From Pristiophorus japonicus (taxonomy: Eukaryota): a stretch of 64,000 bases of DNA. The stretch is from NCBI RefSeq assembly GCF_044704955.1, contig NC_091999.1, positions 22,196,001 to 22,260,000 of the forward strand, given 5' to 3'. A model generated the notes under the pieces. That model saw only the letters and a program-made list of their open reading frames with translations, did not search any database and had not been told where the DNA came from. The position numbers and the translations under genes were made by a program. The stretch's first letter is position 1; each line of letters opens with the position of its first letter. This document shows positions 1 to 37,037 of the stretch, one piece after another.

Positions 1-1460
1 TGTGTTTATGTAATTGTGTGCGTGCTTTTCTCTGTGTGTGTACGTGTATGTGTAAAAGTGTGTGTGTGTGTTTATGTGTAACTGTGTTTGTTGATGTGTA
101 AGTTTGTGCACGTGTGCAGTTGTAAGATTGAGTATGCGTGTGTAAATCTTTGTGTTGTTTTGTGTAAGTGGGCCTGTGTCTATATGGAAGCGTGTGTTTA
201 TCTGTAATTATGAGTGTGCGATTTGGTGTAGTTGGGTGCAGGTAAGTTTATGTATAAGGACGTCCATGTCTAAGGGTTTGTGTATTGATGTTTGTATGTG
301 TATGTTTGTGTGCAAGTGTGTTCACGTGTGTGCTTATGTGTAAGTGTATGTGTATCCTTGTGTATATGTATGTAAGTTCATGTGTGTGTTTGTCAGTAAG
401 TGTAAGTGTGTGATTATGTCTGAGTGTTCGTTTATGTTTAGGTGTAAGCGTGTGCGTGTTTACATGTAACAGTGGGTTTGCAGGTAAGTTTGTGTGTGTT
501 TGTGTGTGTGTGTTTTATGTTAGTGTGTGTGTGGATTGATGTTTGTGTTTATTTGTGTGTGTGTGTGTAAGTGTGTTTTTGTAAGTGAGTGTTTGGATTG
601 ATGTATGTGGAAGTGTGTGTTTGTAAGTGGGTGTTTGGATTGACGTGTGTGGAAATGTTTGTGTGTAAGTGAGTATAAGTGTGCTTTTTGTAAGTGTGTT
701 TGGATTGATTTTTGTGTTTATGTGTGTTTAAGTGTGTGTACGTGTGTTTTGTGTAAGTGCGCATGTGGATTCATGTGTGTGTTTATGTGTGTGTAAATGT
801 GTTTTGTGTAAGTGCGTATAAGTGTTTGCACGTGTGTTTTGTGTAAGTGTGTGTGTGGATTGACGTGTGTGTTTATGTGTGTGTAAGTGTGTGTGTGTGT
901 GTGTTTTGGTAAGTGCGTGTGTGGATTGATGTGTATATTTATGTGTGTGTAAGTGTGTTTTGTGTAAGTGCGTGTGTGGATTGATGTGTATGTTTATGTG
1001 TGTTAAGTGTGTTTTGTGTAAGTGCGTGTGTGGATTGATGTGTGTGTTAATGTGTGTGTAAGTGTGTGTACCTGTGTTTTGTGTAAGTGTGTGTGTGGAT
1101 TGATGTGTGTGTGTATGTGTGTGAAAGTGTGTTTTGTGTAAGTGCGTGTATGGATTAATGTGTCTATTTATGTGTGTGCAAGTGTGATTTTTGTAAGTGT
1201 GTTTGGATTGGTGTGTGTGTGTTTATGTGTGTGTAAGTGTGTTCTGTGTAAGTGTTTGTAAATGTGCTTTGTGTAATTGTGTGTTTGGATTGATGTATGT
1301 GTGTAAGTGTGTGTAAGTGTATTTTGTGTAAGTGTATGTGTGGATTGATGTGTGTAATTATGGGTGTGTAAGTGCGTGTCAGTATGTTTTGTGAAATGTG
1401 TGTGTGGATTGAAGTGTGTCTTTATGTGTGTGTAACTGTGTTTTGTGTAGTGTGTGTTTG
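1..1460. repeat. Complex (TG)-rich microsatellite/minisatellite
   Basis: Continuous tgtgtg/tgtaag/ggattgatg motifs; recurs at ~2013-2680. Explains the Cys/Val and His/Thr-rich ORFs. Confidence 0.95.
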
Positions 1461-3232
1461 GATTATTGTCTATTATTGCTAATGTTCGAAGTTTCAGAGA
1501 GTATCAATAACTGGATTTTACAATGATGGTTTTCATTATATTCTAGTTATGTACAATATTATGTGTCAGAGTGTTAACGTATGTCTTTATATGTAAGTCT
1601 ATGTGTGTTTATGTGTAATTGTGCACTTACACAAAAACACAAACACTTACACAAAATCATCAACACACTTCCATGTGAACACACACAACCTCACTTTCAT
1701 ATTTATTCTCCCCGACTCTGTAAATGTGTTCTGTTTGAGGAATAATGTGACGTCAGCCGAAAGAATGCCACAATTCAACCGATGGGCCTCAGAAACATCA
1801 GGGACACTGTGAGAAACCCGCAGAGGATTCATTCACCAGTTTAGATATGGCCCGTTAGAATTCAACATGTTTGTTTACAATTAACAGGGACAATTTCACC
1901 CCAACACTATTTAAAAATATTGCGTGGAATAAATAGTTATTTCAGAATAGAATACTCATGTGGCAAGTTTAAAATCTTTACACCATGGGTTAGAATCTCA
2001 CATTGTACACAATGTGTTTATGTATGTGTAAATGTGTTTTGTGTAAGTGTGTATAAGTGTTTGTAAGTGTGTGTAAGTGTTTGCATGTGTGTTTTGTGTA
2101 AGTTTGTTTGTGGATTGACGTGTGTGTTTATATGTGTGTGCGTGTGTGGATTGATGTGTATGTTTGTGTGTGTGTAAGTGTGTTTTGTGTAAGTGTGTGT
2201 GTGGATTGATGTGTGTATTTATGTGTGTGTAAGTGTGTTTTGTGTAAGTGCGTGTGTGGATTGATGTGTGTGTTTATGTGTGTGAAAGTGTCTTTTTTGT
2301 AAGTGCGTGTATGGATTGATGTGTGTATTTATGTGTGTGTAAGTATATGCAAGTGTGGTTTTTGTAAGTGTGTGTATGGATTGGTGTGTGTGTGTTTATG
2401 TGTGTGTAAGTGTGTTTGGTGTAAGTGTGTGTGTGGGTTGATGTGTGTGTTTATGTGTGTGAAAGTATGTTTTATGTAAGTGCGTGTATGGATTGATGTG
2501 TGTATTTATGTGTGTGCAAGTGTGCATTTTGTAAGTATGTGTTTGGATTGGTGTGTGTGTTTATGTGTGTGTAAGTGTGTTTTGTGTAAGTGTGCTTTGT
2601 GTAAGTGTGTGTGTGGATTGACGTGTGTTTTGATGTGTGTAAGTGTGTGTAACTGTGTTTTGTGTAGTGTGTGTTTGGATTGAGATCTATTATTGCTACT
2701 GTTCGAAGTTTCAGAGAGTATCAATAACTGGATTTTACAAAGATGGTTTTCATTATATTCTAGTTATGTATAATATTATGTGTCAGAGTGTTAATGTATG
2801 TCTTTATATGTAAGTCTATGTGTGTTTATGTGTAATTGTGCACTTACACAAAAACACACACACTTACACAAAATCATCAACATACTTCCATGTGAACACA
2901 CACAAACTCACTTTCACATTTATTCTCCCCGGCTCTGTGTAAATGTGTTCTGTTTGAGGAATAATATGACGTCAGCTGAAAGAATGCAACGATTCAACTG
3001 ATGGGCCTCAGAAACATCAGGGACACAACTGTGAGAAACCCGCAGCGGATTCAATCACCAATTTAGATATGGTCCATTAGAATTCAACATGTTTGTTTAC
3101 AATTAACAGGGACTGCTGCACCCCCAACCCTATTTAAAAAATATTACGTGGAATAAATAGTTATTTCAGAATATAATACTCATGTGGCAAGTTTAAAATC
3201 TTTAGACCATGGGTTAGAATCTCACATTGTAC
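778..3232. repeat. Tandem duplication of a ~1.23-kb unit (~778-2008 / ~2013-3232)
   Basis: Unique segment 1470-2008 is repeated near-identically at 2688-3232, each preceded by a TG array. Confidence 0.9.
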
Positions 3233-3293
3233 TGATGCCAACTTAGTCCATATAAAATAGGGTGGTTCACTTCCCATGTCCCTGCAGGGGGCG

Positions 3294-3675
3294 CAGTGGT
3301 GATTACATGAATTACACATTGCCCTTTCCCCTCTCGCTGGTGGATGTGAGAGGTCCAGTAAGCTAATAATTACCCTTTACTCTCTCTCTGCTGGGGGAGT
3401 GGGGAGCGACAGTAGATTACCAATTACCCATCACAATCTCTGCTGGGGGAGTGCCTGATACAGTGGGTTAACTATTGCCCATTTCCCTATCTCTGGTGGA
3501 GGAGGGAATGTACAGTGGGTTAACAATTGCTGTTCTTCTCACTCGCTGTTGGGGGAATGGTATTAAAGTGGGCCAACAATTACCCTTCCCCCCCTCTCTC
3601 TAGTTAGGGAAGTGGGACTAAAGTTGGTTAACAATTACCCTTTCCCCTCTCTCTGGTGGGGAGTGGAGGTACAGT
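3294..3675. repeat. Degenerate ~52-54-bp tandem repeat, ~7 units
   Basis: Unit approx. cagtgggttaacaattaccctttcccctctctctggtggggagtggaggta. Confidence 0.8.
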
Positions 3676-4030
3676 TCGTGTTCGTGTGTGGCACTCAGTT
3701 CAGTTCCCCGTTGTTGCAATATGAAACTGACTTCAATTATAAATTTGCGATAGACAACCCGAGAAACAGGGACACCGAGATATAAATGTGCTGCCTTTAT
3801 TTAACGGAAATAGGAAAGGTAGTAAGTTTGTGAAGTTACTTTCATGAATCCTGTAAAGATAGAGCTTCACGCTGTCTCTAGCCCATGGTGTATCTGCACT
3901 GGGAGCTCTGGCTGTACAAGCCTTGGACCAGAGACCAGCAAACACCCTACTTCGCCCTCACATTGGCCAAAATAGGAAACACAATTAATTGAGCGGCAGT
4001 GTGTTTAGCTCACTGTTGGAAGGAGAACAC

Positions 4031-4036
4031 TTTATT
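4031..4036 (-). terminator. Secretory poly(A) signal AATAAA
   Basis: tttatt on the plus strand, ~40 nt after the stop codon. Confidence 0.85.
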
Positions 4037-4074
4037 GGTTTCTATTTAAGAACTGAAATGCAATCGAGAGATTG

Positions 4075-4466
4075 TCATTGACAAGAATTGACGGTGTCCA
4101 TCAGAACAAGGGAAATGTTCACAAAACTGGGTTTACCGCTGGATTTATTGACGATTCTGTTGGTGATCTTCAAGGGGATCGCTTCATGTCCCACCACACA
4201 GGAGTAAGAAGCGCCGCTGGCCCACTCCTCGGCTGCAATGGATAGCAGGCTGTACATGAAGAAGGAGCTGCTGCAGTTCTCCGCCATCACCTCGGTGTTC
4301 TTGTAGTTGCCGGAATCCACCGGCTTGTCATTGACGGTCCATTTGACGAAAATCTCTCGGGGGGTGAAACCTCTCACTAAGCAGGTGAGGCTGACCAACC
4401 TCTGAGCGGAGACATCTTCTACCGAGGGCAGGAGGACAGACACGGCCGGTTCCCGCCGATCTTTCG
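4075..4466 (-). CDS. IGHM: IgM heavy chain Cmu4 exon plus secretory tailpiece
   Basis: tctacag|(A)[13 protein letters not shown]...LTCLVRGF...YSCVVGHEA...[22 protein letters not shown]; tailpiece with NIS sequon and penultimate Cys. Confidence 0.97.
4131..4137 (-). promoter_or_regulatory. Internal splice donor in Cmu4 for the membrane (TM) isoform
   Basis: AGC G|GT AAA (Ser-Gly-Lys) at the Cmu4/tailpiece boundary, the conserved position of the mu-membrane donor. Confidence 0.8.
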
Positions 4467-5380: not shown

Positions 5381-5689
5381 CCTTTTCCTTGTGGATGGAA
5401 TCTCTGATCGGAGTCGGCATATCCTGATGGCTCACCACGCAGTAGAACTTATCCCCACTCAGCCAGTCTTGTGTCGAGATGTTTAAGTTGCTGATCACAC
5501 TGTTGGGATTCTCTCCCGGTTGGACGGCAATCTCTGATTTCAAAGCCTCCTTTTCTCGGGTCCAGGACACGGTGAGCCCATAAGGAGCATCAGACACGAC
5601 GCAGGTTAAGGTCACCGTCGCCTCCAGTAAGACCTGTTCCAGTGACGGTGGGCGAAGAGTGATTTTTGAATCACTGCATGGGACATCCA
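5381..5689 (-). CDS. IGHM: IgM heavy chain Cmu3 exon
   Basis: tttcgcag|(M)[31 protein letters not shown]...[13 protein letters not shown]...KEK G|GTGAGC; 309 nt, phase 1/1. Confidence 0.96.
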
Positions 5690-7640: not shown

Positions 7641-7958
7641 TCTGAGATCTGCTGAAGTTACGGCTTTGCGTGACCCCTTCATGAGTGACTTGGCAGGTGT
7701 AGACCGAGCCGGTGAACCATTCCTCGGCAGGGACTGTCAGCCGACTGGCCGTCGAGAAGTTCCCGTTCACCTCAAAGACGGGAGAGGTGACGAAGCCCGA
7801 ATCCATGAGTTGTCCACTCTTCAGCCAATTCACGGTCAGTGACTTTGGCCGGAAATCGATGATTGAACACACGGCGCTTGCATATCTGCTGGTGGTGATT
7901 TGTTCAGTGGAACTCAGCGTGAGGAGAACAGTTGGAGGACCGATGTCCGGTTCAGGAT
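7641..7958 (-). CDS. IGHM: IgM heavy chain Cmu2 exon
   Basis: tttgaag|(D)[13 protein letters not shown]...AVCSIIDF...VNWLK...YTCQVTHEG...SQ A|GTAAGA; 318 nt, phase 1/1. Confidence 0.95.
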
Positions 7959-8605: not shown

Positions 8606-8905
8606 CTGGCATTGTGATAGCCCAGACCGACACACCACGTCGAACCTCGCAGAAGATTGTGCTGCTCCCCACATCTGACTTGGTGATGGTTAACTGGCTG
8701 CTCTGGGTGTAGATTCCTTTCTTTTTGAGCACTGACGGGTAGGTCTTCAATGCAGTGGTGATGGGATCTTTATCTTTCTTCCAGGAAAGGCTGGTGATGT
8801 CGGGGGAGTAGTCCATCGCCAAACAGCCGTACGTGATGGAGCCATCGGTGCTGGGTTGTTCACAGGAGGAGAGCAGGGCGTAGAGATTGGGGGGAAACGG
8901 TGTTA
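8606..8905 (-). CDS. IGHM: IgM heavy chain Cmu1 exon
   Basis: tttctcag| ...[34 protein letters not shown]...WKKDK...IFCEVRRG...MP G|GTTAGT; 300 nt, phase 1/1; closely resembles horn shark-type Cmu1 as I recall it. Confidence 0.96.
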
Positions 8906-9659
8906 CTGAGAAAGAATGGCCCATTGAACAAGTTAGACTCTGTAATCCATGCTTATAAAAGAAAGAAACAACTCGAAATTTGACTGCAGAATAAACTAAT
9001 TCCACCATTTTCCCATCAAAGACTACACGGGCATTTGAGTTTCTGTCAGTTCCTTCATAAGCACCTGTCGATGCCCTGGTCAGGAACATACCTTTCTCTC
9101 CCCGAGCTCTATCACATTACAGACCAAGAACCTTTACACAACTCGCCAATAAAGAATCCTTCATTGGTTCATACAATAGAAGAACAGAGGCATGTTCCTG
9201 CTTTTTCGGCCTGCATTTATTTCTCAATCAGCACCATTTATGGTCCTTTATTTAATTGCAGTTTGGGGAAGTTCGCTCTGTGCACATTGCCTGCAGTGTA
9301 TCCCAACAAAACAACAATGACTGCACTTCAAAGTAACAGCGGATTTCCTGCTTCGGACGTTAGCAAAAAACCCTCTAAATTTGCCTACCACATAATTCAA
9401 CAGATAGCATTGCCATAGTCTAGTTTCTAAGATTCAAGCTGGAGGTGAATCGCGATTGAGTCGAATTTCTCCCTTATTTCCTCAGCATTTTAGGAAGAGC
9501 GATGTCACTCAGTGCACTGTGATCTGGGCTCTATCCCATCCTATTGAATGCATGTCTCTTGAGTTTCCTCCTCCATCCCATTCAATTAATAATTCGAATA
9601 AAATACCTTTCCAAAATCCGGTTAATTGGAAGTTTCTCCTTAAATGGCCCATTTCAGTT

Positions 9660-10585
9660 CCCATTGCTGTTCTTGTTATATAACAATGACCTGGACTTGG
9701 TTATAGGGAATACAGTTTCGAAGTTTGAAGATGAGGCAAAACCTGGCAACGTAGCCTATAGTGAAGCATGAAAGCAGCAGACTCCATGAGGAGACAGATG
9801 GACCAGTGAAATGGGCCGGGACATGGCAATTGCAATTTAATGCGAATCATTGAGAAGCGATGCACATTAGATGGAAGATGGAGAGGCAGTATAATCTAAA
9901 TAGTATTGTTTTGAGGGGATGCACGAACAGAGAGACGTAGATGTACATATTCACAAATCTTTGAAGGGGGCAGGGCAAACTGATAAGACAGTTATGAAAG
10001 ATTATGGGATACTTGACTTTCTAAATGGGGAATTGACTACAAAAACAAGGCGGTTATGCTAAACATACAGATCACATGTTAGGCCTCAGCTGGAGTATTG
10101 TGCACAATTCTGGAACAACAATGTAGGAAGGATGTCAAGCCCTTGGGGAGTGTAGAGGGGAGGCTTTTACCAGGATTATGCCAGGGATGCGGACTTCAGT
10201 TATGTGGGGAGATTGGAGAAGCAGGGATGTTCTCCTTAGAACAGAGGTTAAGAAGAAACGTAAGAGAGATATTCAACATTATGATAGTTTTTGATAGAGC
10301 AAGTGGGGAGAAACTGCTTCCGCTGGAAAGTAGGTGGGTAACCAAAGGTCACAGATATAAATAATTGGCAAAAGATCAAAAGGGAAAATTGGGGCAATTG
10401 TTTCACACAGAGGGTTGGTAATTTCAGGAATGCTCCAAGCAGATCCTCCTGTATGTCAGGAGGACACATGTGCCCGTTTACAAGGAAAACCCTGGGGAGT
10501 TGGATTAAATTGGACAGCTCTTTCAGAGCCGGCACAGGCACGATGCTTGAATGGCCTTTACAGAGCTGTGAGATGCTATCATTCT
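9660..10585 (+). mobile_element. Degenerate CR1 RT fragment in the J-Cmu1 intron
   Basis: SKFEDEAK (FADD-like) and ctggagtattgtgcacaattctgg (LEYCxQFW) motifs. Confidence 0.8.
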
Positions 10586-11289
10586 ACACGAGTCAGTGTG
10601 AATAATGCTTCTAGATTTAATGGAAGGAAACGCTTCATATTTTGGACACCTCTACCAGATCTATTTTTATTGTTCGTTATAATGAAAGAGGATATTTAAA
10701 ATAAAGGGATCTTATAAATCTGACGCAAATTAGTCAATCGCATGCTGTTATAAAGGCTTAAAGTTCATTGCGAATGATTACTTATTGCAGGTTGACTCTA
10801 TCTCTTTAAATGTTTCACAGAATTGCAGCTCAGTGACTGTGCACCTTGTGTTGTGACCCAGACCAATAGCTGCATCTCTCATTGTTTGTCCCTACATTTA
10901 ACCTGCTCAAGATGAATTGAACAACATAATGTTTCTAAACACGAGGTCCTCATGACGGTTATTTGAAGCGGGAGTCTCGATATCCTCCATTTAAATTGTG
11001 AAAATAACTTACAGCCTCCCAACAGATCAGAACAGCCGCTGCTTTCTGCAGCGTTATTCACTTCCTGAAACGGTTTGTTCTGAAAGTGAGCTGAGGGTCA
11101 GGCCAATCGTGTTCAATAGTAATCTGATGCTCAGAATGTACAAACATGAATAACTCATTAACAATTTGGCATTTTTTAAGAAAGAATATAAACATCAATG
11201 AATTTGCGTTGTTTAATCTGGGCAATCGGACGATTTATTGTTTATATCTGGCACGAGTAGTTTATCTGCTATCTGTTAGACGCAGATAA

Positions 11290-12150
11290 CGGTGCCTTGA
11301 ACACTGCCTGACCAAGCACTCTCAGGTCAGATACAGCACGGATACAAGAGCAAAGCTCCCGCTATGCTGTCGTGTGGGTCAGGCCAGGTATAGCAAGGGT
11401 TACACACAGAGTAATATGTTATCTGTACTATCCCGTCAAACATTCCCAGCTCAAGTACTGCAGAGATGTGCTACGAAATGTCTCCCCATAAAATGCATTA
11501 TCAAATTGACCGATTAGACTCAGCACAATTATCACACGTACAAAGAAAAGCTTCCCATACACTGCCCCTTTAAAGCACACCAGCTCACCTATAGCTCTGA
11601 TTAAATATAAGATCAATCTATATTGAAGGAGCCAATTAAGCTCCACGTCCTTGTAAATAAAAGGTTAAATGTTGATTAAAGCTATCTCTGCAATGTCCCA
11701 TCAAGCAATGCCAGATAAGGTAAAGTACTGGTTAGTTGCAGAGTAAAGCTCCTTCATCACTGTCATATCAAACAGTCACAGTGTAGGTACGGCACGAGTT
11801 AGATAAAAAGTAGATTTCCCTCCACACTGCCAATTAAACACATTCAGGACAGGTCCAGTAAGGCTTGGATAAAAAATAAAGCTTCCTCTACAATGTCCCA
11901 TCAAACACTCCCAATACAGGTACAGAATAAAGCTCCCTCTAGAATGTCCCATTAAACATTCCCAGGGCAGGTACAGCATGGGTCAGCACAGAGTAACACT
12001 CCCTCTACACTGTCCCATCAAACACTCCCAGGGCACGTACAGCATGGGCTAGATACAGAGTAAAGCTCCTTCTGCACTGTCCCATCAAACACTTCCAGGG
12101 CAGGTACAACTGGGTTAGAAACTGATTAAAGCTTCTTCTACTGTCCCCCC
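11290..12150 (+). repeat. ~67-bp tandem repeat family (cagagtaaagctccctctacactgtcccatcaaacactcccagggcaggtacagc...)
   Basis: Period 67 at 11989/12056; same family at ~23950-24380, ~40200-40420 and ~50640-50990. Confidence 0.85.
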
Positions 12151-15100
12151 GTGGTGTTTCGGAACTGCTCCTTCTGACTGTCAAAATCTGGGTTACTGAT
12201 CTCTTTTCTGCGGCGACTCCTCAACCTTAAAGTCAATCTTTTACGTTTCTCACATATACCAGTTTCTTAAATAACTAGTTAAATGACACTCCCCGCAATA
12301 CACGATCACAATCCAGAAGTTTTACAACCCGTCAGGAGGACTGCTGATTCTCACACAGTGAGCAGGCGCACAGGAACAGAACTGACAAAAACGGTGCAAC
12401 AACGGTGCTCCAGTGAGAGAGACCAGTTCTATCTGTTAATTTCAATGAAGCTCTTTGATTTCTAATGTATTTCTTGTCAATTTCCAACCACCTCAACTCT
12501 GCAGATTTTTTGAAATTAAACTGATATTTATTTGAGAAACTATTCAACATCCAGCCATTCCTCCCTCTCGGTCGACTATCTTGTAAACCGTGTAAAAATT
12601 AATTTCCCTGAAAATAAGTATCTGGAAATAATTCTCATTCCACGGAAAGTGCTGCGCGTTAAACGGGACTAGGTAACAGGGTAAGAATGTCACAATCCAG
12701 GAGACATATACATTGAAACCTGATCACCCACTGATTTGACATATTTGCAATAGTAAATATAACCTGTAAAATCATCGAGGCAAAATCAACTAAAATATTA
12801 AGCGATAGCTTATCGAACTCAGCACAGCCGAGTTATACATGCATTATCTTCTAAATTAATTAGGAATTAATTAAACATTCTCTCCAACCCTTGAGATAAT
12901 GTAATAACTGTAATGTTGACCAGTATGCAATGCAATTGCCAGAGATCATTTATGTTTAATGAATTAGAACGAATATCACATTCTAAGTTTGTGTTCGTGT
13001 TTGCTGATTATTGGAAATACTCTGAGTACCTGTCTGGCACTTCCTCCTCAGAAGCACACGTACCTGGAACTTTTGAAATTAAATTAATGTGCTTGAATTT
13101 CAGTCTTACTGATACAATTAATGAATAATAATTTAAAAACCTTTTCTGCCTGGCAACTTGTGATATATTAAGGTTTACTTAACTTACCATAACAATTCAT
13201 CAACAGTAAAATATTAAGCAGCATATTAATACATAAATACAATCAGAAAAATAAATTATTTTTCTTAACTCAAATCACATTTGACTAATTGACGATAATT
13301 ACGCAGTTCTACTTCTGTCCAGTTCTCTACCGATACATTTTTAAATTCTACATATTCTGACATAACAAAAACTGTGTCTATTTTCAGAGTACATTGCACA
13401 TGATGGATTGAGGAGTGGACTATTTTAAATAGTTCACTGTCCGGCCCGGGTCACAAGTCCGATGTGCTGTAAACCACTTGTTTACTAAACTGGACTCTCG
13501 AGCTGAAATATTCTCCACAATCTTAACTTCCCAAAAATGGTTTTCTTAATTAAAACCAGTTTGCAGTCAGTAGCAGAGCTTCTGCTATTTAATAACACAG
13601 ACAATCATTTACAGTTCACTCCCATTATTCACACAATGCCCCCAAATTAATTATTAAATACATTCTGCTATTTCTTGAAACTAATTTCCAGAATGGTTAG
13701 TGTAAAACTGTAGGATAACAAATCATTCAGACCATCTGCAACACTGAACCTGAATGAGCAAATGGAGGAGAGACTTTGTTCATCAATTTAATATTAATAA
13801 TAATTAACATAATTCTCAGATATGACCTGTGCTTTGTCTACCGTTCTATCCCGTATATAGCACCGCTTTCGGAGAAAGGAAGTTGTGTTAAATTCTAAAC
13901 AAGATGAACATTTTTTAAGTAAATTAATCTGCTTGAATTTCAATGGATTATTTGCCTATCTCCAGCCTATGCAGTCTTGAATTTGAATATAATCACATGA
14001 ATAATTCTTTGACTGCCGGTGACGCCTGACTCACAGCCTCTGATCTTGCAAACTGCTTAAGATTAGTTTACTGATAATTCTATCGGTATCAAACAAAACA
14101 CAATAGTGATTCAATAACAAATTTCGGTTGCACAGTAAGAATTTCATATTAAATTAACAAAATGCAATTTACAACACGGCTTTGAGTTATAATTAAAGAC
14201 ACTGCTAATCATCTCTGTAAACAGGAGGTAACAAGTAACTGAACATCGACTCAAACTGAACACACGGTGGAATCAATATGTTGTCAGTGAACTAATTGCA
14301 GGCATAATTAATAATTGTATCCAGCCTCTAAAAGTTTCTGCTCCTCTTAATGGAGCCCAGTGTACAGCAGGATTTTGGAATGCGAATAATATTAAGAAAA
14401 TTATATTGATATTGTAACATATTTTAAGAACATTGGAAGATATTATCGCATTATAATATTATAATCGGTTTGTTAATAGTAATTTATTTCAGCTACAACC
14501 TGAATAATTGCTAATTATATAGCTGGTAATTACAGTTACGTTTTACTCAGTAAATATCAGCATCGTAAACATAAATTTATAGTTCAATATATAATTATCA
14601 CCAATAATTGTTATGTTAAAATATATTTCAATGATTTCTGATTCCTAAAACCTTCCTGTTCTCTGCCTACAATCTGCTTTCAAACAGTTTCAAACACATA
14701 TCTTGTTTGTATTCGATCAGGAACCTGCTGCTGCCCGCTGTCACCGATATTAAACATTGTAGAAACGCCAAATAGTTTCACAAATTTTTGGTATTCTGAA
14801 TAACAGCGGCACAAACTCTCCTCAGCAGATCAATACTAAATCACATCACTGAGGGGCGGACAGAACCTTTCATGAACAGATCCTTCATTCTCTAAACCAT
14901 TTCAGCAGAATTAAATGTATCATTGCAAAAAGTCTCTTTACAGAATCACCGAAGCCGCCTAACACTAAAGTAACTAATGATTGAATTCAACTGAAATATA
15001 AAATAATGACAGCAGAATTGTGATTTGGTGGATCATGTAAAATACATTAATGTTAATATTATAGCATATTTTAATAATAATGGATGATATAACTACATCA

Positions 15101-15690
15101 TTATAATATTAGTAATATTAATTTAAATCAGGTCCATTGGAATTTAAATCAGGTCCATCTGGAAATGTGTTAATTTTTCAGTCCTTAATTACAGCAACAC
15201 TTCACGTATTGAATCTGTGCATTCGGGAACATTCGGTCAGTAGATGACAAATGTAATTTTCACTAAAATCTTTAAATTCTTTAAGAATATATATTGAGCG
15301 CTAAGGTTTCTGTTATGTGTCTAAAATGTTCTTTCAAAAATATTTAAACACAATGTTTGTATTCGATCAGAAAAACTGCAGCAATCATAGGTCACCGAGA
15401 TTAAACATTGCAGAAGTGTCAAACAGTGTAACAACTTTAAAGTATTTAACGAAACTCAAGCAAAGAAATTCGTTAGCAGATAAACACCAAATCACTTCAA
15501 CAACAACTTATGTGGAGAAACAGTTGAATTCTATAATCACATTGTAGCAGAATTACATAAAACATTGAAAAACCTCAATAGAGAACCCACCGAATCCAAG
15601 TTTCAGTGAACGAAATAATTATTAAAATAAAGAGAAATGTAAAATAAAGGCACAAATACAACAGTTGCAGAATGTATGAATGTTCCTTAC

Positions 15691-15755
15691 TTGCAATCAC
15701 CGTCACCATGGTCCCTGGTCCCCAGTAGCCCATGGCGTCCCTATTCCCGTGGTCC
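15691..15755 (-). CDS. IGHJ: Fused (germline-joined) D(D)-JH segment: DHGNRDAMGYWGPGTMVTVIA
   Basis: WGxG motif, TMVTV and A|GTAAGG donor; 31 nt between heptamer and Trp codon, open in the J frame, no internal RSS. Confidence 0.88.
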
Positions 15756-15783
15756 CACAGTGATAGGAACCCGTACAAATATT
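15756..15783 (-). other. 5' recombination signal sequence, 12-bp spacer, of the D/J block
   Basis: Read from the coding end (plus strand): CACAGTG (15756-62) + ATAGGAACCCGT (12 nt) + ACAAATATT (6/9 nonamer match). Confidence 0.9.
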
Positions 15784-16188
15784 GCATTCAGTCTCTGCTC
15801 AGTACTGATTCTCAACATTCATTCGAAATACACATGCACTTCAAATACAAATTCGCTTCTTATCAAGTTTAGAATTTAGCCAACAGTTAGCAGAAAAAAT
15901 AGAAGGAGAACACAGTTCTCACCAGCTCCCTGCAGGTATCGGGCACAGTGAATCGAGCATCATGTCCAGCTCTGCAATTCTTGACACTGTTAACATTAAA
16001 CAGGAGCACAACCGAAACCTCCCTCTGTACATTGGTTAGAGTGTTACATTTTCACCATTGAATTATCAGTGTCTTAGTTTTGTAAGAAGCGGTTTGTGGT
16101 CTGGTTTTGAACACTGCCGTTAACATTGCATTTGACACAATTACTGACCGTCAGGTTATGTTGGAAGTTATTGAATTCCCCCTCGATC

Positions 16189-16227
16189 TGTTCTTGTACG
16201 GGTCCAGCCCTGGTTCCTCTCGCTGTG
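16189..16227 (-). other. V recombination signal sequence, 23-bp spacer
   Basis: Minus strand CACAGCG + AGAGGAACCAGGGCTGGACCCGT (23 nt) + ACAAGAACA. Confidence 0.95.
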
Positions 16228-16532
16228 GTGCCTTGCACAGTAATAGATGGCGGTGTCTTCGCTCCGCAGTTTCTTCATGTCCAACGCGAAGATGTTGCTT
16301 GAAGTATCTTTGGACACAGTAAATCGGCCCTCAGTCCCCGGGGTGTAATGCTTGTCCGATGAACTGTAATATCTAATCAGCCACTCCAGCCCCTGTCCGG
16401 GAACGTGGCGGACCCAGTACATGTAGCTGCCACCAAGATCTAAGCCGCTGGTTTTACAGGTCAGTCTCAGGGAGCCCCCGGGAATCCTGGTCTCTGCCTC
16501 GGGCTGAGTCAACACCATATCCGACTGGACAC
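16228..16532 (-). CDS. IGHV: Unrearranged VH exon (shark IgM-type VH), open frame
   Basis: [26 protein letters not shown]...[13 protein letters not shown]...[33 protein letters not shown]; canonical Cys/Trp/YYC, directly followed by an RSS. Confidence 0.97.
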
Positions 16533-16657
16533 CTGTAGAAATAATCAAAAACCCCGAGGATCAATCCTGGTGAAATGATTCCTAATTCTGTAACATTCCA
16601 GAGAGACTAACACTGAGACAGGAACAGTGAAAGACTTGGACAATAAAAACTACTCAC

Positions 16658-16703
16658 GGGAAAAGAAAGCCAGCAACAGACTGAGAGAAATAGCCGACCT
16701 CAT
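16658..16703 (-). CDS. IGHV: IgH leader (L) exon, MRSAISLSLLLAFFS + phase-1 split codon
   Basis: ATG at 16703, hydrophobic signal peptide, ends TCC C|GTGAGT donor; 125-bp intron to the V exon acceptor ttctacag; splices in frame ([10 protein letters not shown]). Confidence 0.95.
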
Positions 16704-18465: not shown

Positions 18466-18615
18466 NNNNNNNNNNNNNNNNNNNNNNNNNNNNNNNNNNN
18501 NNNNNNNNNNNNNNNNNNNNNNNNNNNNNNNNNNNNNNNNNNNNNNNNNNNNNNNNNNNNNNNNNNNNNNNNNNNNNNNNNNNNNNNNNNNNNNNNNNNN
18601 NNNNNNNNNNNNNNN
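18466..18615. other. Assembly gap (150 N) after a GATA/GA microsatellite
   Basis: N run. Confidence 0.99.
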
Positions 18616-20040
18616 GTGCTGGGTCTACGACTGTTCACATTTTATATTAATGATTTAGATTTTGGAGTCGAAAACACAATTTCTAAATTTTCAAATGCAC
18701 GAGTGGGGGGCGGGTCGGGGTTTCAATACTGTGGAACACTGCTACGAATTGCAAGAATGCATGAATTGACTAATTAATTTCAACACAGATAAGTATGAGG
18801 TATTACGTTTTGGTAAGAAAAATAAGGTCACTTATCACTTATAAAATAAGAATCCTAGTGAGATGGAGGAACCAAAGTCTCTGAGAGTGCAAATACACAC
18901 ATCATTAAAAGTAGCAACGCAATTAATAATGCCATAAAAAGAAGGAAACATGCACGCGGGTTTATTTCTAGAGGGATAGAATTGAAAAGTGCAAAAGTTA
19001 TGCTAAACTTGGTGATACCACATTTGAAGTACTTTGTACAATTGTGCAAAACCACGCCCTTTCTCTGAAGCCCTGCATATGTTTCCATTTAGATATGTGG
19101 ATAGTGCAGGGAAGTGCAGTTGAGGTAGAAGTTCAGCTATGATCCCGTTGAATGATGGGACAGGCTCGAGGAACCGTATGGCCTACTCCTGCTCCCAATT
19201 CTTATGTTCTTATGTTCTGATTTTCAAGAAAATATGGACCTTAGATACACAATCTCTTCTCATAGGACAGCTGCCGCCCCAACCACCCCCCCGACCCCTG
19301 CTCCGCCATCCCAGGAATCAGGCTGATGCACCTTCGATGCACTCCCTCTAAGGCAAGTATATCCTTCCTTAGTTTAGGAGAAATAAACTGCACACAATAC
19401 ACGAGGTGTAGTCTCAGCAGGGCCCTATAGAAGTGCATAAAGGCTTCTTTGATCTAATACTCCAATCCCTTTGCAATAAAATGTTGCTTACCATTTGCTT
19501 TCCTAATTGGTCACTTTGTCTCTATGTTAGCTTTCTGTGATTCGTGTACAAGGCCATCCAGGTCTTTCTGAGTAGCAACATTACCCACTTTCACAGCATC
19601 CAAAAAATATTCTGCGTTTCTATTTGTCCTATCAAAATGCGTAACTTCACACTTCTCCACATTATACTCAATCTGCCATGTCCTTGCCCACTCACCTAAC
19701 TTGTCAATATGCCTTTTCGGCCTCCTTACTTGCTCCTCACTGCTTACTGTCCTACCTAACTTTGTTTTATACAGTACACTAATTTCGTCATCTTTCTATA
19801 CACGTGTAGAAGTACTAACAATCTGTTTCTAGGTTTTTGATAGCTTATTTAATTTTATATTTTCTCCCATATGATCAGTTGCATGTGCATCTTTTGCAGA
19901 ATTCTAAAATCTTCCCAATTTTCGGGCTTACTACTGGTTTTGTCAACATAATACGCATGTTCAATTAATTTAATACTATCTTTAATTTATTTTGTTAGCC
20001 ACAGTTGCACCATTTTTCCTGTCAGGTTTTTATTCATTAT
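18616..20040. mobile_element. CR1 fragments (plus ~18616-19215, minus ~19240-20040)
   Basis: RT motifs (LFTFYINDL; LHLVYCVQF) and a ttcttatgttcttatg tail. Confidence 0.8.
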
Positions 20041-20999
20041 GGAAGTTTATCTAATCTGACGGCTCTGTATTATGAGCCGAAGGTGAATTTGCAAAATAAT
20101 TTTGCAAATTCCGCCCTTGATACTTCCTGATCATCTGCACCTCTTGGTGGTTCGCTCTAAAAACAAATCCTCTGCGTAAACGTTCAAGTAAGTTATAGTG
20201 GTTGGAATTGTGAATCATGTTTAAATTAAGCTCTGGGGCCTACAGCTGATATCCTTTATCAGCAGGTGGCGACAGTGATCATATTGAAAGATGAGTCATG
20301 TGGAGACGGATGTTGCTGAGCATTTCAGTCACCGTCTGCATTGTCAACACAAGTAATAGCATTTTAACAATATAATTAATGCTCAGATTACTTCTCAGTC
20401 AGTCAAATTTGAAGGGAGCATGTATCCTTCGAAATAATCTGAAGGGCAAAGAAAGATAGCATTATTTCAATGCAAACTTTAGGAAGATTGTCGGGCTGTT
20501 GCCGAGGATGCAGAGGAGATTGCTGCAAGGCATGAGGGAGTTCAATTATGTCGACACGAGAGAGGATGGGATTATTCTTATTATAGCAGGGAATGCTTAG
20601 GGCGGAATTAACAGAGGTTTTCAAAATTGTAAAGGGGTTTCATAGTGTTGATAGTAAGGTAGGGTTTCCATCGGCAGGTCTATCGGTAACCAGAGGACAA
20701 AGATTAAGATGATTGATGAAATAAATCTAGATGGGAGAAAAGGAGATTTTTTTATGCAGCGAGTTGTAATAACCTAGAATGTATTGTCTGAAAGGGTGAT
20801 GGCAGCAGATTCAATTATAACTTTCAAATCGGGAAATGATATATATTTGAAAAGGAAAGATGATCTGTGTAATAAAAAGAGAGACAGTGTCGAGGATAGT
20901 ATAAACAGAGACAGTGCCTGGCGTAATATAAACAGAGACTGGGCCGAGAGTAACAAAAACAGAGACAGCATTCAGTTTAATATAAAAAGAGACAGGGTC

Positions 21000-22555
21000 A
21001 GTACTTAAGGAGGTGGCCTTGGAAATAGTGGATGCATTGACAGTCATTTTCCAACATTCCATTGACTCTGGATCAGTACCTATGGAGTGGAGGGTAGCCA
21101 ATGTAACCCCACTTTTTAAAAAAGGAGGGAGAGAGAAAACAGCGAATTACAGACCGGTCAGCCTGACATCGGTAGTGGGTAAAATGATGGAATCAATTAT
21201 TAAGGATGTCACAGCAGTGCATTTGGAAAGAGGTAATATGATATCCAAGTCAGCATGGATTTGTGAAAGGGAAATCATGCTTGACAAATCTTCTGGAATT
21301 TTTTGAGGATGTTTCCAGTAGAGTGGACAAGAGAGAACCAGTTGATGTGGTATATTTGGAGTTACAGAAGCCTTTGGACAAGGTCCCACACAAGAGATTA
21401 ATGTGCAAAGTTAAAGCACATGGGATTGGGGGTAGTGTGCTGACATGGATTGAGAACTGGTTGTCAGACAGGAAGCAAAGAGTAGGAGTAAATGGGGACT
21501 TTTCAGAATGGCAGGCAGTGACTAGTGGGGTTCCGCAAGATTCTGTGCTGGGGCCCCAGCTGTTTACACTGTACATTAATGATTTAGACGAGGGGATTAA
21601 ATGTAGTATCTCCAAATTTGCAGATGACACTAAGTTTGGTGGCAGTGTGAGCTGCAAGGAGGATTCTTTGAGGCTGCAGAGCGACTTGGATAGTTTAGGT
21701 GAGTGGGCAAATGCATGGCAGATGAAGTATAATGTGGATAAATGTGAGTTTATCCACTTTGGTGGTAAAAACAGAGAGACAGACTATTATCTGAATGGTG
21801 ACAGATTAGGAAAAGGGGAGGTGCAAACAGACCTGGGTGTCACGGTACATCAGTCATTGAAGGTTTGCATGCAGGTACAGCAGGCGGTTAAGAAAGCAAA
21901 TGGCATGTTGGCCTTCATAGCGAGGGGATTTGAGTACAAGGGCAGGGAAGTGTTGCTACAATTGTACAGGGCCTTGGTGAGGCCAGACCTGGAGTATTGT
22001 GTACAGTTTTGGTCTCCTAACCTGAGGAAGGACATTCTTGCTATTGAGGGAGTGCAGCGAAGGTTCACCAGACTGATTCCCGGGATGGCGGGACTGATCT
22101 ATCAAGAAAGACTGCATCAACTGGGCTTGTAGTCACTGGAGTTCAGAAGAATAAGAGGGGACCTCAAAGAAACGTTTAAAATGCTGACGGGGTTAGACAG
22201 GTTAGATGCAGGAAGAATGTTCCCAATGTTGGGGAAGTCCAGAACCAGGGGACACAGTCTAAGGATAAGGGGGAAGCCATTTAGGACCGAGATGAGGAGG
22301 AATTTCTTCACCCAGAGAGCGGTGAACAAGTGGAATTCTCTACCACAGAAAGTTGTTGAGGCCAATTCACTAAATATATTCAAAAAGGAGTTAGATGAAG
22401 TCCTTACTACTAGGGGAATCAAGGGGTATGTTGAGAAAGCAGGAATGGGGTACTGAAGTTGCATGTTCAGCCATGAACTCATTGAATGGCGGTGCAGGCT
22501 AGAAGGGCCGAATGGCCTACTTCTGCACCTATTTTCTATGTTTCTATGTTTCTAT
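21000..22555 (+). mobile_element. 5'-truncated CR1 LINE (RT C-terminal half and 3' UTR)
   Basis: GVPQDSVLGP, KFADDT, LEYCVQFWSP; (TTCTATGT)n tail at 22532-22555; same family as the 54.8-59.4 kb element; possible TSD acagg(g/t)tc. Confidence 0.95.
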
Positions 22556-29399: not shown

Positions 29400-30805
29400 T
29401 TTAAAAAGGAGACTGCAAAAAGCAGGAAACTATAGGCTAGTTAGCCTAACATCTGTCGTTGGGAAAATACAGGACTCCATTATTAAGGAAGCAGTAGCGA
29501 GATATTTGGAAATGCATAATTCAATTAAGCAAAGTCAGCATGGTTTTATGAAAAGGAATTCATGTTTGACATATTTGTTTGTGTTCATTGAGGATGTAAC
29601 GATTAGGGTAGATAAGGGAGAACCAGTGGATGTGTTATATTTGGATTTCCAGAAAGCAATCGATTAGGTGCCACATAAAAGGTTCCTGCACAAGATAAAA
29701 GTTCAAGGGGTTGGGGCGAATGTCTTAGCATAGATAGAGCTTTGGATAACTAACAGAAAACAGAGAGTCGGGATAAATGGGTCATTTTCCGGTAGGGAAA
29801 CAGTGACTAGTGGGGTGCCGCAGGGATCGGTGCTGTGTCCTCAAATTTTACAATCTATTTTAATGTCTTGGATGAAGGGACAGAGTGTAATGTAGCCAAG
29901 TTTGCTGATGATAAAATGATGGGTGGGAAAACAAATTGTGAGGAGGACACAAAATATCTGCAAAGGGATATAGACAGGCTAAGTGAGTGGGCAAAAGTTT
30001 GGCAGATGGAGTATATTGTGGGAAAATGTGAGGTTATCCACTTTTGCTGGAAAAATTAGAAAAGCAAATTTTAATTTAAATGGAGAAAAATTGCTAAGTG
30101 CTGCAGGACAGAGAGACCTGTGTGTCCTTGTGCTTGATACACAAAACGTTAGTATGCAGGTACTGCAAGTAATCAGGAAGGCAAATGGAATTCTGGCCTT
30201 TATTGCAATGGGCATAAAGTATGTAAGCAAAGGAGGCCTGCTGCAACTGTACAGGGTATTGGTGAGGCCACACCTGATGCACAGCGTACAGTTTTGGTCT
30301 CTGTATTGAAGGAAGGATATACGTGCATTGGAGGCTGTTCAGAGAAGATTCAGTAAGTTGCTTCCGGATATGATGCGGATGACTTGTGAAGATAGGTTGA
30401 GTAGGTTGGGCCTATACACATTGGAGTTAAGTACAATGAGAAGGGATCTTATCGAAACGCATAAGGTAATGTGGGCCTCGACAAGGTGGATGCAGAGAGG
30501 ATATTTGCACTAATCGGGGAAAATAAAATTTGGGACATAGTTTTAGAATAAGGGACTGCCCATTTAAAGCTGATATGAGGTGGAATTTCTTCTCTCAGAG
30601 GATTGCAAATCTGTGTAATTCGCTGTCCCAGAGAGCTGTGGAGGCAGGATCATTGATTATATTTAAGGCGGAGATCGGCAGATTTTTGAGCGATAAGAGA
30701 AATAACGGTTATGGGGAGCGGGCAGGGAAGTGCAGCTCTGTCCCTGGTCAGATCAGCCTACACCTGCTCCTATTTCTTATGTTCTTCTGTTCTTACGATT
30801 CTATG
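29400..30805 (+). mobile_element. Degenerate CR1 RT and 3' end
   Basis: VAKFADD, LVRPHL, QFWS motifs and CR1 tail. Confidence 0.9.
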
Positions 30806-32331
30806 ACAATGTTTACACTGGCAGGAGGGCTATTATCCGGAGGACACAGCTATTACTGCCCAAGACCATGCCTCAGGTTATATTGTACTAGGCAGTGTCT
30901 TTGTTTTGATTTTATTAAGACCTGTCTCATTTATTACTGCACAGGGCCCTGACTCCGTTGATATTATATTAGACCCTGTCACAGTTATTTCTGCACTAGA
31001 CTCTGTCTTTGTTTATATTAGATCAGAGCCTGTTTCTCTTTTTATTATATTAAACCCTGTCTCAGTTATAACTGCACTAGTCCAGTCTATGTTTACATTA
31101 CACAGAACCTTTCTCTGATTTCAGGGCTGTAGGCACAGACGCAGTTACCGTTTTGCTAAACAATGTTTCTCTTTATATTACATTCAACCGTGTCTCTGTT
31201 TATATTACATTGGGCCCTCTCTCAGTTATTACTGTACTAGGCCCGTTTTTTTAAAATATTACACAAGATCTTTCTGTTTATATTGTACTAGATCCGATCT
31301 CTGTTAAATTACACTAGATCCTGTCTCTGTTTATATTACACTAGACCCTGTCTCGTTTATATTACACTAGATCCTGTCTCTGTTTATACTACGCTCGACC
31401 ATGTCACTGTTTATATTACTCTACATCCTGCCTCTGTTTATATTACACTAGACCCTGTCTCTGTTTATACTACGCTAGATCATGTTACTGTTTATATTGC
31501 ACTATATCATGTCTCTGTTTATATTACACTAGACCACGTCTCTGTTTATATTACAAGAGATGCTGTCTCAGTTTACATTATACTACAACCTGTCTCTGTA
31601 TATATTACACGCGACCCTGTCTCTGTTTTTATTACACTAGACCATGTCTCTTTTTATAATACACTCGACCCTGTTTCTGGTTATATTACACTAGACTTTC
31701 TGTCTCTGTTTATATTACACTAGACCACGTCTCTGTTTATAATGCACTAGATACTGTCCGTATTTATATTACACGAGAACATATCTCTTTTTATATTACA
31801 CTAGATCCTCTCTCGATTTATGTCACATTAGACCCTGCCTCTTTTTGTATTAAACTCGAACCTGCCTCCGTTTATTTTACACTAGACGCTGCCTCTGCTT
31901 ATATTACATTACACCCTGTCTCTGTTTATGTTACATTAGGCCCTGTCCCTGTTTACAATACACTAGACCATGTCCCTGTTTATATTACACTCAAATCTGT
32001 CTCTGTTTATGTTAAATTAGACCCTGTCTCTTTTTAAAGGCCTCTAGGCCCTGTCTAAGTTACCATTCTGCTAAACCATGTTTTATTTTACATTACATTC
32101 AACGCTATTTCTGTTTATATAAAGTAGGGCCCTGTCTTAATTATTACTGCACTAGACCCTGTCTTTTGTTATATATTACACGAGCCCATTTCCCTGTTTA
32201 TATTACACTAGACCCTGCCTATGTTTCTTTTACACAACGCCTGTCTCTGTTTATATTCCACTAGACCTTGTTTCTGTTTATATTACACTAGAAGTTGTCA
32301 CTGTTTATTTCATGCTAGATCCTGTCGCCAT

Positions 32332-33135
32332 CTAAAAAAGGACGTAGACAAAAGCAGTAAACTATAGACCAGTTTGCCTAACATCTGTCGTTGGGAAAAT
32401 GCTGGAGTCGATTATTAAAGAAGCAGGAACGGGCATTTGGAAAAGTATAATTCAATCAAGCAGAGTAAACATGGTTTTATGAAAGGGAAATAATGTTTGA
32501 CAAATGTGTTGGATGTCTTTAAGGTTGTAACGAGCAGGCTGGATAAAGTAGAACAAGTGAATGTAGTGTATTTGCATTTCCAGAAGGCAATCGATTAGCT
32601 GCTACATAAAAGGTTCCTGCACAAGATAAAATTTCACAGGGTTTGGGGGTGATATATTAGCATAGATAGAGTATTGGTTAAATAACAGAAAACAGAGAAC
32701 TGGCTTAAATGGGTCATTTTCCGGTTGGCAAATAGTGTTGTGTGGTGCCGCAGGGATCGTGCTGTGGCCTCAACTATTTACATTCTATATTAATGGCATG
32801 GATGAAGGGACTGAGTGGAATATAGCCAAATTTGCTGATGATAGAAAGATGGATGGGAAAGCAAACTATGAGGAGAATACAAAAGATCTGCAAAGCGATA
32901 TAGCCAGGCTAAGTGAGTGGTCAAACATTTGGCAGATGGAATATAATGTCGGAAAATGTGATGTTATCCATTTTGGCAGAAAAAATAGAAAAGCAAATTC
33001 TAATATAAATGAAGAAACATTGCAAAGTGCTGCAGTACAGTGGGACCTGGGTGTCCTTGTGCATGAAACACAAAAAGTTAGCATGCAGTTACAGCAGATA
33101 ATCAGGAAGACAAATGGTATGTTGACCTTTATTGG
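32332..33135 (+). mobile_element. Degenerate CR1 RT fragment
   Basis: IAKFADD, WQMEYNVGKC. Confidence 0.88.
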
Positions 33136-34799
33136 TACTGTACTAGACTCTGCTTATGTTAATATTGCACAGTGCCCTGCCTCATTTATTATTGCTCTTG
33201 ACCCGGTGTCTAGTTATATTGCACTATGCCCTGCATCTGTTCATATTACACTGGGCCATGCCTCAGTTATTACTGCACTAAGCCATGTCTTTGTTTATAT
33301 TACACAATGTTCTCTCTGTTATACTGCATGAGAACACGTCTCTCTTCATAATACAGTAGGCCCTGTCTCAGTTATTATAGCACTGCGCTGTGCCCCTTTT
33401 CATATAGTCTTATATTAAATACTGTCTCATTTGTTGCTGCCCTCTGGTATGTATCTCTCATATTACATGAAACCTTGCCTCAATTATAATGTACTAAGCA
33501 ATGTCTATGTTTATAGTACACTGGGTACTCTCCGTTATTACAATCGATACCATCTCTCTAGTTATATGACATTCGGCACTGTCACAGTTAATACTACACG
33601 AAACGACGTCTCCTCTTTATATTGCTCTAGTTTTTGTCTCTGTTAATAATGCATTAGACCATTCTTCTCTTTAAATTACACGATACACTTTCTCAATTAG
33701 TACTGAACTATGCCATGCCTCTATTCAATTAGATGACGGATGATCGACATCTTAACTCCATCGACCAGCTTTGGTTCCGTCACCCGTAATCTCCTAACCG
33801 AACCAAAATGTACCAATCAATCTCTGGCAGCAATTAGAAAATAATGCCTCTGCCTGTTATAGCCTTCCTTTTATGAAGGGATTTGATACGGTTAAAAGTG
33901 AGACAGTGTTTACACTGACAGGAGTGTCGGTAACCAGAAGATACATTTTTAAGATCATTTGCAACAAAAAAACAGAAGGGAGATGTGGAGATGTTTTAAT
34001 GTAGCAAGTGGTTCTGATCTGGAATGCAGAAGATATACACTATCGTTCGTTTTTATGAATAGAGATATAGGGTGCAAATGCAAGGAACATACAGCTAAGC
34101 ATCTGTAAAATATTGGTTATACTCCAGCTGGAGTATTGTGTTTAATTCTGAGAGCCACATTTAGGAAAGATTGAACGGCCTTGGAAAGGGTGCTTGGGGA
34201 ATTTACTAGAATAGTACCTCGGATAAAATACTTCAATTCAGTGAAGACACTCGGGGCATTGAGATTGTTGTCATTAGAGCGGAGAAGGTTAAAAGGAGCT
34301 TTTACAAACATGTTCAAGACCGTGAATGATTCTGACACTTGAAATAAGAAGACAATTTTGCAGTGGCTGACGGGTCTGTAACCAGATGACACACACTTAA
34401 GGAATTGGCAAAAGAGCCCGAGGCGAAATGAGGAAAAAGAAATACACAATGAGCTGTTATGATCTGGAATACTCTATCTGATAGGGTGCTGCTTTCGGTA
34501 ATAAATTTCAAAAGTGAATTGGATAAATAATTGAACTGGAAATAATGCAGGGTTATTGGGAAATAGCAGGGGTAGTGGGACCAATTGGTTAGCTGTTTCA
34601 ACTCAGTCAGGGATAGGCACCAGAGAGCTGAATGTGCACGGTGTGTGCTGTATCATTCTTCCATTCTGCGTTTCTATATCTACATCATCTCTCGGTTCAT
34701 ATTACACTAAGACCCCTCTCGGTTTATAAAACACTGGTTCCTGCCGCAGTTATTATTGCATTGGTCAAGGCATTTTTTTATATCACGCTAAGACTTTGG

Positions 34800-35720
34800 A
34801 ACAAAAGAACATAAGAATATAAGAAATAGGAGCAGGAGTAGGCCATTTGTCCCCTCGAGCCTGCTCTGCCATTTAATAAGTTAATGGCTGGTCTGATCAT
34901 GGACTCAGCTCCAATGCCCTGCCCGCTCCTCCTAACCCTTTAATCACTTATTGCTCAAAAATTTGTCCATCTCTGCCTTGCATACATTCAATGACCCAGC
35001 CTTCACACCTCTCTGTTGCAGAGAATTACACAGATTTACAAGCCTCTGAGAGAAGAAATTCCTCCTCATCTCAGTTTTAAATGGCAGCACCTTATTCTGA
35101 GATTAAGCCTCCTAATTTTAGTTTCCCCTGTGAGTGGAAATGTCCTCTCTGCATCCACGATCTCGAGCCCCTTCATTATGTTATAAGTTTCGATAAGATC
35201 ATCTCACATTCTTCTGAACTCCAACATGTATAGGCCCAACCTACTCAACTTTTCTTCATACATCAATCCGCTCTTCTCCGGAATCAACCTAATGAACCTC
35301 CTCTGAAAAGTCTCCAATGGATGTATAACCTTCCTTAAATTCGGAGAACAAAACTTTACGCAGTTCTCCAGCTGTGGCCTCACCAATACCCTGTAGAGTT
35401 GTAGCAGGACGTCTCTGCTTTTGTACTCAATTCCCTCTGCAATAAAGGCCAACGTTCCATTTGCCTTCCTGATTACTTGCTTTACCTGCATAGTAATATT
35501 TTGTGTTTCATGCACAAGTACACCCAGGTCCCTCTGTACCGCAGCACTTTGCAATTTATCTCCATTTAAATTATAACTTGTTTTCTTATTTTTTTCTGCC
35601 AAATTAGATAATCTGATATTTTCACCGTTATAATCCATCTGCCAAATTTTTGTCCACTCACTTAGCCTGTCTATATCACCTTGCAGATTTTTTTAGTGTC
35701 TTCATCACAATTTGCTATTG
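34800..35720 (-). mobile_element. CR1 3' fragment
   Basis: ORF 35204-35638 (QRDLGVLVHE...LYRVLVRPQLE); aagaacataagaa tail. Confidence 0.88.
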
Positions 35721-36905: not shown

Positions 36906-37037
36906 NNNNNNNNNNNNNNNNNNNNNNNNNNNNNNNNNNNNNNNNNNNNNNNNNNNNNNNNNNNNNNNNNNNNNNNNNNNNNNNNNNNNNNNNNNNNNNN
37001 NNNNNNNNNNNNNNNNNNNNNNNNNNNNNNNNNNNNN
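36906..37037. other. Assembly gap (132 N)
   Basis: N run, at the same homologous position as the gap at 47233-47478. Confidence 0.99.

Follow-up and report, generated by a model that had tools for sequence, protein, structure and literature searches.

An IgM Minicluster of Pristiophorus japonicus with a Probable D-J Fusion and a Separate V

The minus strand of the window, by which we mean the whole 64,000-nucleotide stretch of contig NC_091999.1 that was analyzed, carries a shark-type IgM minicluster (leader-V...DJ...CH1-CH4) in which one D and the J are probably fused in the assembled, presumably inherited DNA. With this D-J fusion and a V that is still separate, the heavy chain would be completable in one recombination step. 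An earlier note on this DNA had described a VH, a 23-RSS, a 12-RSS, a 472-bp interval between the two signals, and 31 nt of coding DNA before the Trp codon of J, and all of these lie on the minus strand at the coordinates listed below.

Organization of the Cluster

One VH and one J were found in the whole 64-kb window. The parts of the cluster, in the order in which the gene is read, are as follows.

16658-16703, minus strand: leader exon 1, 46 nt, with the ATG at 16703-16701 and the donor GTGAGT (sequence and splice check)
16533-16657, minus strand: leader intron, 125 nt, GT..AG
16228-16532, minus strand: VH exon (leader part 2 and V), open, ending ...YYCARH
16189-16227, minus strand: V 23-RSS, comprising CACAGCG, a 23-nt spacer, and ACAAGAACA, directly after the CAC of V
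15784-16188, minus strand: intersegment DNA between both RSSs, 405 bp, with no further RSS inside
15756-15783, minus strand: 12-RSS, comprising AATATTTGT, the 12-nt spacer ACGGGTTCCTAT, and CACTGTG, adjoining the putative D-derived coding DNA
15739-15755, minus strand: putative D-derived coding DNA, GGACCACGGGAATAGGG, 17 nt, running straight into J
15691-15738, minus strand: J-derived coding DNA, 14 nt before the Trp codon and then WGPGTMVTVIA, with a phase-1 donor before GTAAGG
8906-15690, minus strand: J-to-CH1 intron, ~6.8 kb
8606-8905, minus strand: CH1 exon, 300 nt, AG/GT sites, C1-set (E = 5e-9)
7641-7958, minus strand: CH2 exon, C1-set (E = 2e-17)
5381-5689, minus strand: CH3 exon, C1-set (E = 1e-9)
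4075-4466, minus strand: CH4 exon with secretory tailpiece and stop, C1-set (E = 3e-21)

Leader and V together translate as 351 nt in frame without a stop, and the leader intron (16533-16657) is skipped in RNA contigs of related runs (joint 16529>16655, cut +3). The VH exon combines a split leader with the conserved Cys, Trp, and YYC, its coding end reads ...TAT TAC TGT GCA AGG CAC at 16228, and a 23-spacer RSS follows. It matches the Pfam V-set at E = 1e-15, and the best protein matches of V are the VH of bamboo shark, horn shark, and catshark at 72% identity. The J has its Trp codon TGG at 15724-15722 and reads TGG GGA CCA GGG ... GCA A to its end at 15691, where GTAAGG begins. All four constant exons have AG...GT borders and phase-1 junctions compatible with the J donor, and CH4 including the tailpiece matches Ig mu chains at E ~1e-46; these Pfam and protein searches were run exon by exon and not on a joined spliced model. 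The locus is an elasmobranch IgM minicluster, of a lineage without a close representative in the protein database searched. Neither the open reading frame from V into its RSS (in three start variants) nor that from the 12-RSS into DJ has an exact entry in the protein collection.

CH4 contains an internal donor G/GTAAA at 4137/4136, where splicing to membrane exons usually takes place. The earlier note had called all flanking exons intact, which holds for the leader, V, J, and CH1-CH4; no membrane exons were found in window positions 1-4078, the 4 kb between CH4 and the window end, which consist mostly of simple repeat. A long CA/T-rich simple-repeat tract (window 1-2800, minus strand; it translates as THTHT...) follows directly on the C-mu exons. 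On the upstream side, a TATA-like TATTTA occurs at 16802-16797 on the minus strand, ~95 bp upstream of the leader ATG, and the octamer ATGCAAAT is absent from the 390 bp upstream of the leader.

Recombination Signals and the V-to-DJ Interval

A scan of 15500-16400 for recombination signals returned the 23-RSS of V, the 12-RSS, and one weak match of chance grade (5/7 in the heptamer, 6/9 in the nonamer). When up to three mismatches are allowed, each RSS pattern has exactly one site in the 64-kb window, namely the V and DJ signals, whereas about one such match per 64-kb window is expected by chance. The two signals are judged non-random not from their mere presence but because they abut the V and J coding ends exactly and in the correct orientation. 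Both lie off the consensus, with 6/7 matches in the V heptamer CACAGCG and 7/9 and 6/9 in the nonamers. Counted from heptamer to heptamer inclusive, the interval 15756-16227 measures 472 bp; it separates the end of V from the first coding base of DJ and is the stretch that a V-to-DJ deletion would excise; the usual intersegment distance in shark clusters is 250-500 bp (PMC5192425).

The scan of the interval revealed no free RSS-flanked D between V and J, and this missing free D is the departure that sets the cluster apart from an ordinary minicluster. As the earlier note had proposed, V is still split from DJ, the intact VH ending in its 23-RSS, and a single V-to-DJ step is possible, the remaining signals being a 23/12 pair. 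On the V side, a paralogous DNA contig extends from V through the 23-RSS into 15982-16227. A heptamer-like CACTGTG at ~15951-15957 was considered as a relic of a D and rejected, since it lacks a 3' heptamer as well as a nonamer at either spacing, 12 or 23 nt.

The two RSSs (15755-15778 and 16194-16228) are inverted repeats beyond their consensus parts. Over the heptamer and the first nine spacer bases they match at 88% across 17 nt, and ACCCGTACAA and TTGTACGGGT agree at 10/10 positions; from these matches the 12-nt spacer can be read as the 23-nt spacer minus 11 internal bases.

Assignment of D and J in the 31 nt before the Trp Codon

Exactly 31 nt of coding DNA, GGACCACGGGAATAGGGACGCCATGGGCTAC (15755-15725), separate the 12-RSS from the Trp codon of J, and no remnant of a heptamer or nonamer is present at the D/J joint. 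The origin of these 31 nt was assessed from contigs of sequencing runs, compared with the window at 80% likeness so that paralogues show, with many paralogues mixed. X1 is a DNA run of the same species, X7 comes from a further sample of it, and X5 and X6 are RNA-like runs with other organism labels. The references for D and J below are each a single 30-letter loose-end consensus from one contig.

One X1 contig tracks the J of the window up to 15738 and then continues as AACACAGTGAGACACGTTGTGTCAAATACT (plus strand). In gene orientation it presents a paralogous J preceded by a nonamer, a 12-nt spacer, the heptamer CACTGTG, and TT, so that this J starts 2 nt upstream of 15738, ~16 nt before the Trp codon and thus ~15 nt closer to it than the 31-nt form. 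Because the paralogous J with its own 12-RSS starts there, the 17 nt at 15739-15755 are extra. A second X1 contig tracks V down to 16231 and then reads, in gene orientation, AA GGACTACGGGAGTGGGT CACGGTG CAAT; on its sequence it is a VD-joined paralogue (...AGG AA GGACTACGGGAGTGGGT CACGGTG...) with a D of 17 nt. When GGACCACGGGAATAGGG is set against this paralogue D, GGACTACGGGAGTGGGT, 13 of the 17 positions are identical, ungapped and anchored at both ends. The chance of such a match is ~1e-5 with equal bases and 6e-4 at a match rate of 0.35. Rearranged RNA contigs of X5 and X6 match this J as far as a point within 15728-15741, beyond which come diverse D/N letters; none of the rearranged X5/X6 joints listed has a J match that reaches 15755.

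Taken together, the start of the paralogous J, the match to D, and the ends of the J match in RNA place the D/J boundary between 15739 and 15738. The joint is best read as a full-length 17-nt D joined, without N nucleotides, to a J that has lost 2 nt. In the frame of J, the DJ reads DHGNRDAMGYWGPGTMVTVIA without a stop. The 12-RSS retained at 15756-15783 would be the 5' signal of the D; consistent with a D-type signal, its spacer ACGGGTTCCTAT does not resemble CACAACGTGTCT, the spacer in the 12-RSS of the paralogous J. The RSS scan and the comparison with paralogues thus bear out the proposal of a stretch of D-type coding DNA that continues into J without an intervening RSS. Since the X1 contigs include both a short J with a 12-RSS and a VD-joined paralogue, split, VD-joined, and DJ-joined clusters appear to coexist in the species.

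The same comparison bears on the number of Ds. The earlier note had considered a V-(D)DJ form and had taken V23/12-D1-22/12-D2-12/23-J as the baseline, and neither fits this species well: the paralogous same-species J carries a 12-RSS on a short J, as a single contig shows, and because a single D-length element of 17 nt is discernible, V-DJ accounts better for the cluster than V-DDJ. Alternatively, a canonical two-D cluster could have undergone two RAG events in succession in the germline, which fused both Ds to J. The canonical shark IgM cluster does carry two Ds (PMC5192425; PMC2435157), a D2-J join would leave a 12-RSS on the J-side element, and related RNA contigs contain two recurrent CDR3 motifs, ...TATACGGGG... 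and ...GGGATGGGATGG, which could be two Ds. However, the extra 17 nt correspond over their whole length to the one D of the VD-joined paralogue (13/17), the paralogous 12-RSS J shows no D2 remnant in the ~16 nt before its Trp codon, and two trimmed Ds packed into 17 nt that are colinear with a single D are less economical. We therefore consider a V-D1D2J origin unlikely, although it is the best placed of the alternatives.

The second same-species sample contributes a 431-nt X7 contig (window 16232-16403), in which a related V is joined to ...ACAGGGCACTCATGGACTACTGGGGACAAG. The contig represents a VDJ that is either rearranged or fully joined, and its J is another one, of the WGQ type.

Read and RNA Data at the Junction

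The runs X1-X4, which come from one sample that is possibly the assembly's own source, hold 28-39% of the sampled words of the stretch. No contig spanning the V-to-J stretch is among the contigs listed, and none of these demonstrably bridges the junction from an independent animal. The V of the window has private letters on the plus strand (A at 16306, G at 16334, and T at 16344), and at these three positions nearly all of the RNA depth, which stems from runs with other organism labels, shows the other letter. Likewise, none of the RNA joints listed, again from runs with other organism labels, uses 15742-15755, the D part. Because of these labels, and because the survey covers the listed joints, the absence from RNA says little about use of the cluster.

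The same topology arises in shark lymphocytes, so the artefact to guard against above all is the entry of a somatic molecule into the assembly: the consensus might hold a sequence that is not inherited, either a V-DJ intermediate out of lymphocyte DNA or an error of assembly. Shark lymphocytes and thymocytes do frequently contain genuine V-DDJ and V-D-DJ intermediates (PMC2435157), the assembly has an N run 1.7 kb upstream of the leader, and the listed contigs offer none that demonstrably bridges the junction from an independent animal. A rare cell clone should not, however, win the assembly consensus, and a collapse artefact would not delete precisely two RSSs together with the DNA that separates them. 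Somatic shark joints have N regions (PMC2193156), which this joint lacks. Its D differs from the paralogue D at 4 of 17 positions, and its flanks are 10-15% different from those of paralogous contigs, in keeping with an old, diverged locus. On this evidence a somatic or artefactual origin seems a little less likely still than a two-D join.

Least probable of the three is an ordinary, unusually long J with a 12-RSS and no D, or a D-like stretch acquired by gene conversion from a joined paralogue, for although the paralogous J of the same species also has a 12-RSS and conversion between shark clusters is plausible in a multicopy family, the paralogous J and all rearranged transcripts listed put the J 5' end at or below 15741, the extra 17 nt are D-like, the 12-RSS spacer is unlike that of the paralogous J and fits a D-type signal, and conversion would still require a DJ-joined donor and merely move the event elsewhere. 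The earlier note had itself allowed that a 12-RSS with a long J might be the ordinary state in this species; of this, the 12-RSS on J does seem ordinary, being found in the single paralogous contig, and the long J does not.

Proposed Origin and Use of the V-DJ Cluster

For the preferred reading, a germline fusion of one D to J, we propose the following course. The ancestral cluster would have been of the V(23) / (12)D(22) / (12)J type, in which the 3' 22/23-RSS of D and the 12-RSS of J form a legal 12/23 pair that RAG could cut. The DNA between D and J would have been lost together with both signals, and the coding ends would have been joined with almost no processing, D keeping its 17 nt, J losing 2 nt, and no N nucleotides being added. 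The join is probably a single D(22)-to-J(12) event; one such join in a one-D cluster suffices, without recourse to a two-D cluster that joined twice. From the form of the joint, we infer that RAG was the agent and that it acted in the germ cells of an ancestor.

What would remain is a V with its 23-RSS and a DJ with the 5' 12-RSS of the D, 472 bp apart and in the same orientation, so that a lymphocyte would complete the heavy chain by one V-to-DJ recombination, of the deletional kind. The completed chain would have one diversifying junction, and the C-terminal half of its CDR3 would be largely fixed (...DHGNRDAMGYW); at the nucleotide level, the product would read the private letters of V joined to ...GGACCACGGGAATAGGGACGCC. 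Use of the cluster in this manner is presumed, and the RNA joints listed give no sign of it.

A wider proposal is that V-DJ clusters form an inherited, duplicated IgM subfamily that is in use, rearranging by one light-chain-like V-to-DJ step and yielding a semi-invariant CDR3 (...DHGNRDAMGYW). We regard this as a speculative and rather doubtful extension of the present findings. Were such a subfamily used, it might supply an early-life or innate-like repertoire, and it might yield a D-mu-like product from an ATG that reads through the 12-RSS.

A 70-codon frame (window 15575-15787, minus strand; MQYLYGFLSLW-DHGNRDAMGYWGPGTMVTVIA...) starts at an ATG in the nonamer region and runs through the 12-RSS into the frame of J. 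It recalls mouse D-mu, whose reading frame likewise begins upstream of the signal and crosses the RSS to enter J in frame.

Comparison with Known Systems

Germline-joined heavy chain clusters of sharks have been described as partly joined VD-J and VD-DJ and as fully joined VDJ (PMC5192425; PMC4279169), and Lee et al. distinguished rearranged, partially rearranged, and non-rearranged H clusters (PMC2193156). The germline-joined IgH clusters of sharks and skates resemble the present one in gene family, in cluster architecture, and in having fused segments without intervening RSSs (PMC5192425; PMC4279169; PMC2193156), and their partial joins likewise leave one legal 12/23 pair. They differ in that the listed forms have V joined to D, with a D-J join occurring only alongside V-D (VD-DJ), whereas here V is free and D-J alone is joined. 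In the literature searched, which comprised reviews and primary papers on shark Ig, we found no description of a germline V-DJ or V-DDJ, a result that is provisional.

An identical topology is known from somatic DNA, and in the literature consulted V-DDJ appears solely as a somatic intermediate. Malecek et al. (2008) reported V-DDJ and V-D-DJ as somatic intermediates in nurse shark lymphocytes (PMC2435157), in which, exactly as here, a V 23-RSS faces the 12-RSS on a D..J fusion. These intermediates show that RAG can make the D-J join first in sharks (PMC2435157). They are, however, somatic and clonal and contain N regions, whereas the present fusion stands in an assembly, has no N nucleotides, and is apparently diverged.

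The junction signature is matched by germline-joined light chain genes of the nurse shark, in which the signals and the intervening DNA are fully removed, ~2 nt are lost at the J flank, TdT activity is little or none, no N region is present, and RAG action in germ cells has been inferred (PMC2193156). The NS4 light chain genes (Lee et al. 2000; PMC2193156) share the signature of the present joint and coexist with split paralogues. In contrast, a VJ join in the NS4 light chain makes a complete, non-rearranging gene, whereas the cluster described here still needs one rearrangement.

The mammalian DJH intermediate is also a DJ with a 5' 12-RSS that awaits V(23); it is a transient somatic state, whereas the present cluster stands in assembled DNA. 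In IgNAR type III genes, D1 and D2 are fused in the germline, a partial join that does not involve V and that restricts CDR3 diversity. These genes belong to another isotype, and their fusion is a D-D join as opposed to the D-J join here.

Significance

That RAG has acted in germ cells and reshaped antigen-receptor loci is known chiefly from the germline joining of shark Ig genes. The catalogued heavy chain joins are on the V side (VD-J, VD-DJ, and VDJ), so an inherited D-J with a free V would mean that germline joining makes use of the pair on the J side as well. A D-J join together with a 12-RSS on J would further suggest that the RSS wiring of miniclusters is more fluid than the textbook V23/12-D1-22/12-D2-12/23-J, and the cluster offers a natural test case for the size of the repertoire that a one-junction heavy chain can generate. 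The principle of germline pre-joining is already known, and the V-DJ form is an incremental finding, a modest new variant whose novelty is provisional.

Other Features of the Window

The remainder of the window contains LINE-type reverse-transcriptase fragments on both strands (19500-22200, 29400-35700, 43800-45700, and 53700-59300) and three N runs, at 18466-18615 (the run 1.7 kb upstream of the leader), 36906-37037, and 47233-47478. Long minisatellite-like arrays, with frames that read ...DPVSVYITLDPVSVYITL..., occupy ~26-36 kb.
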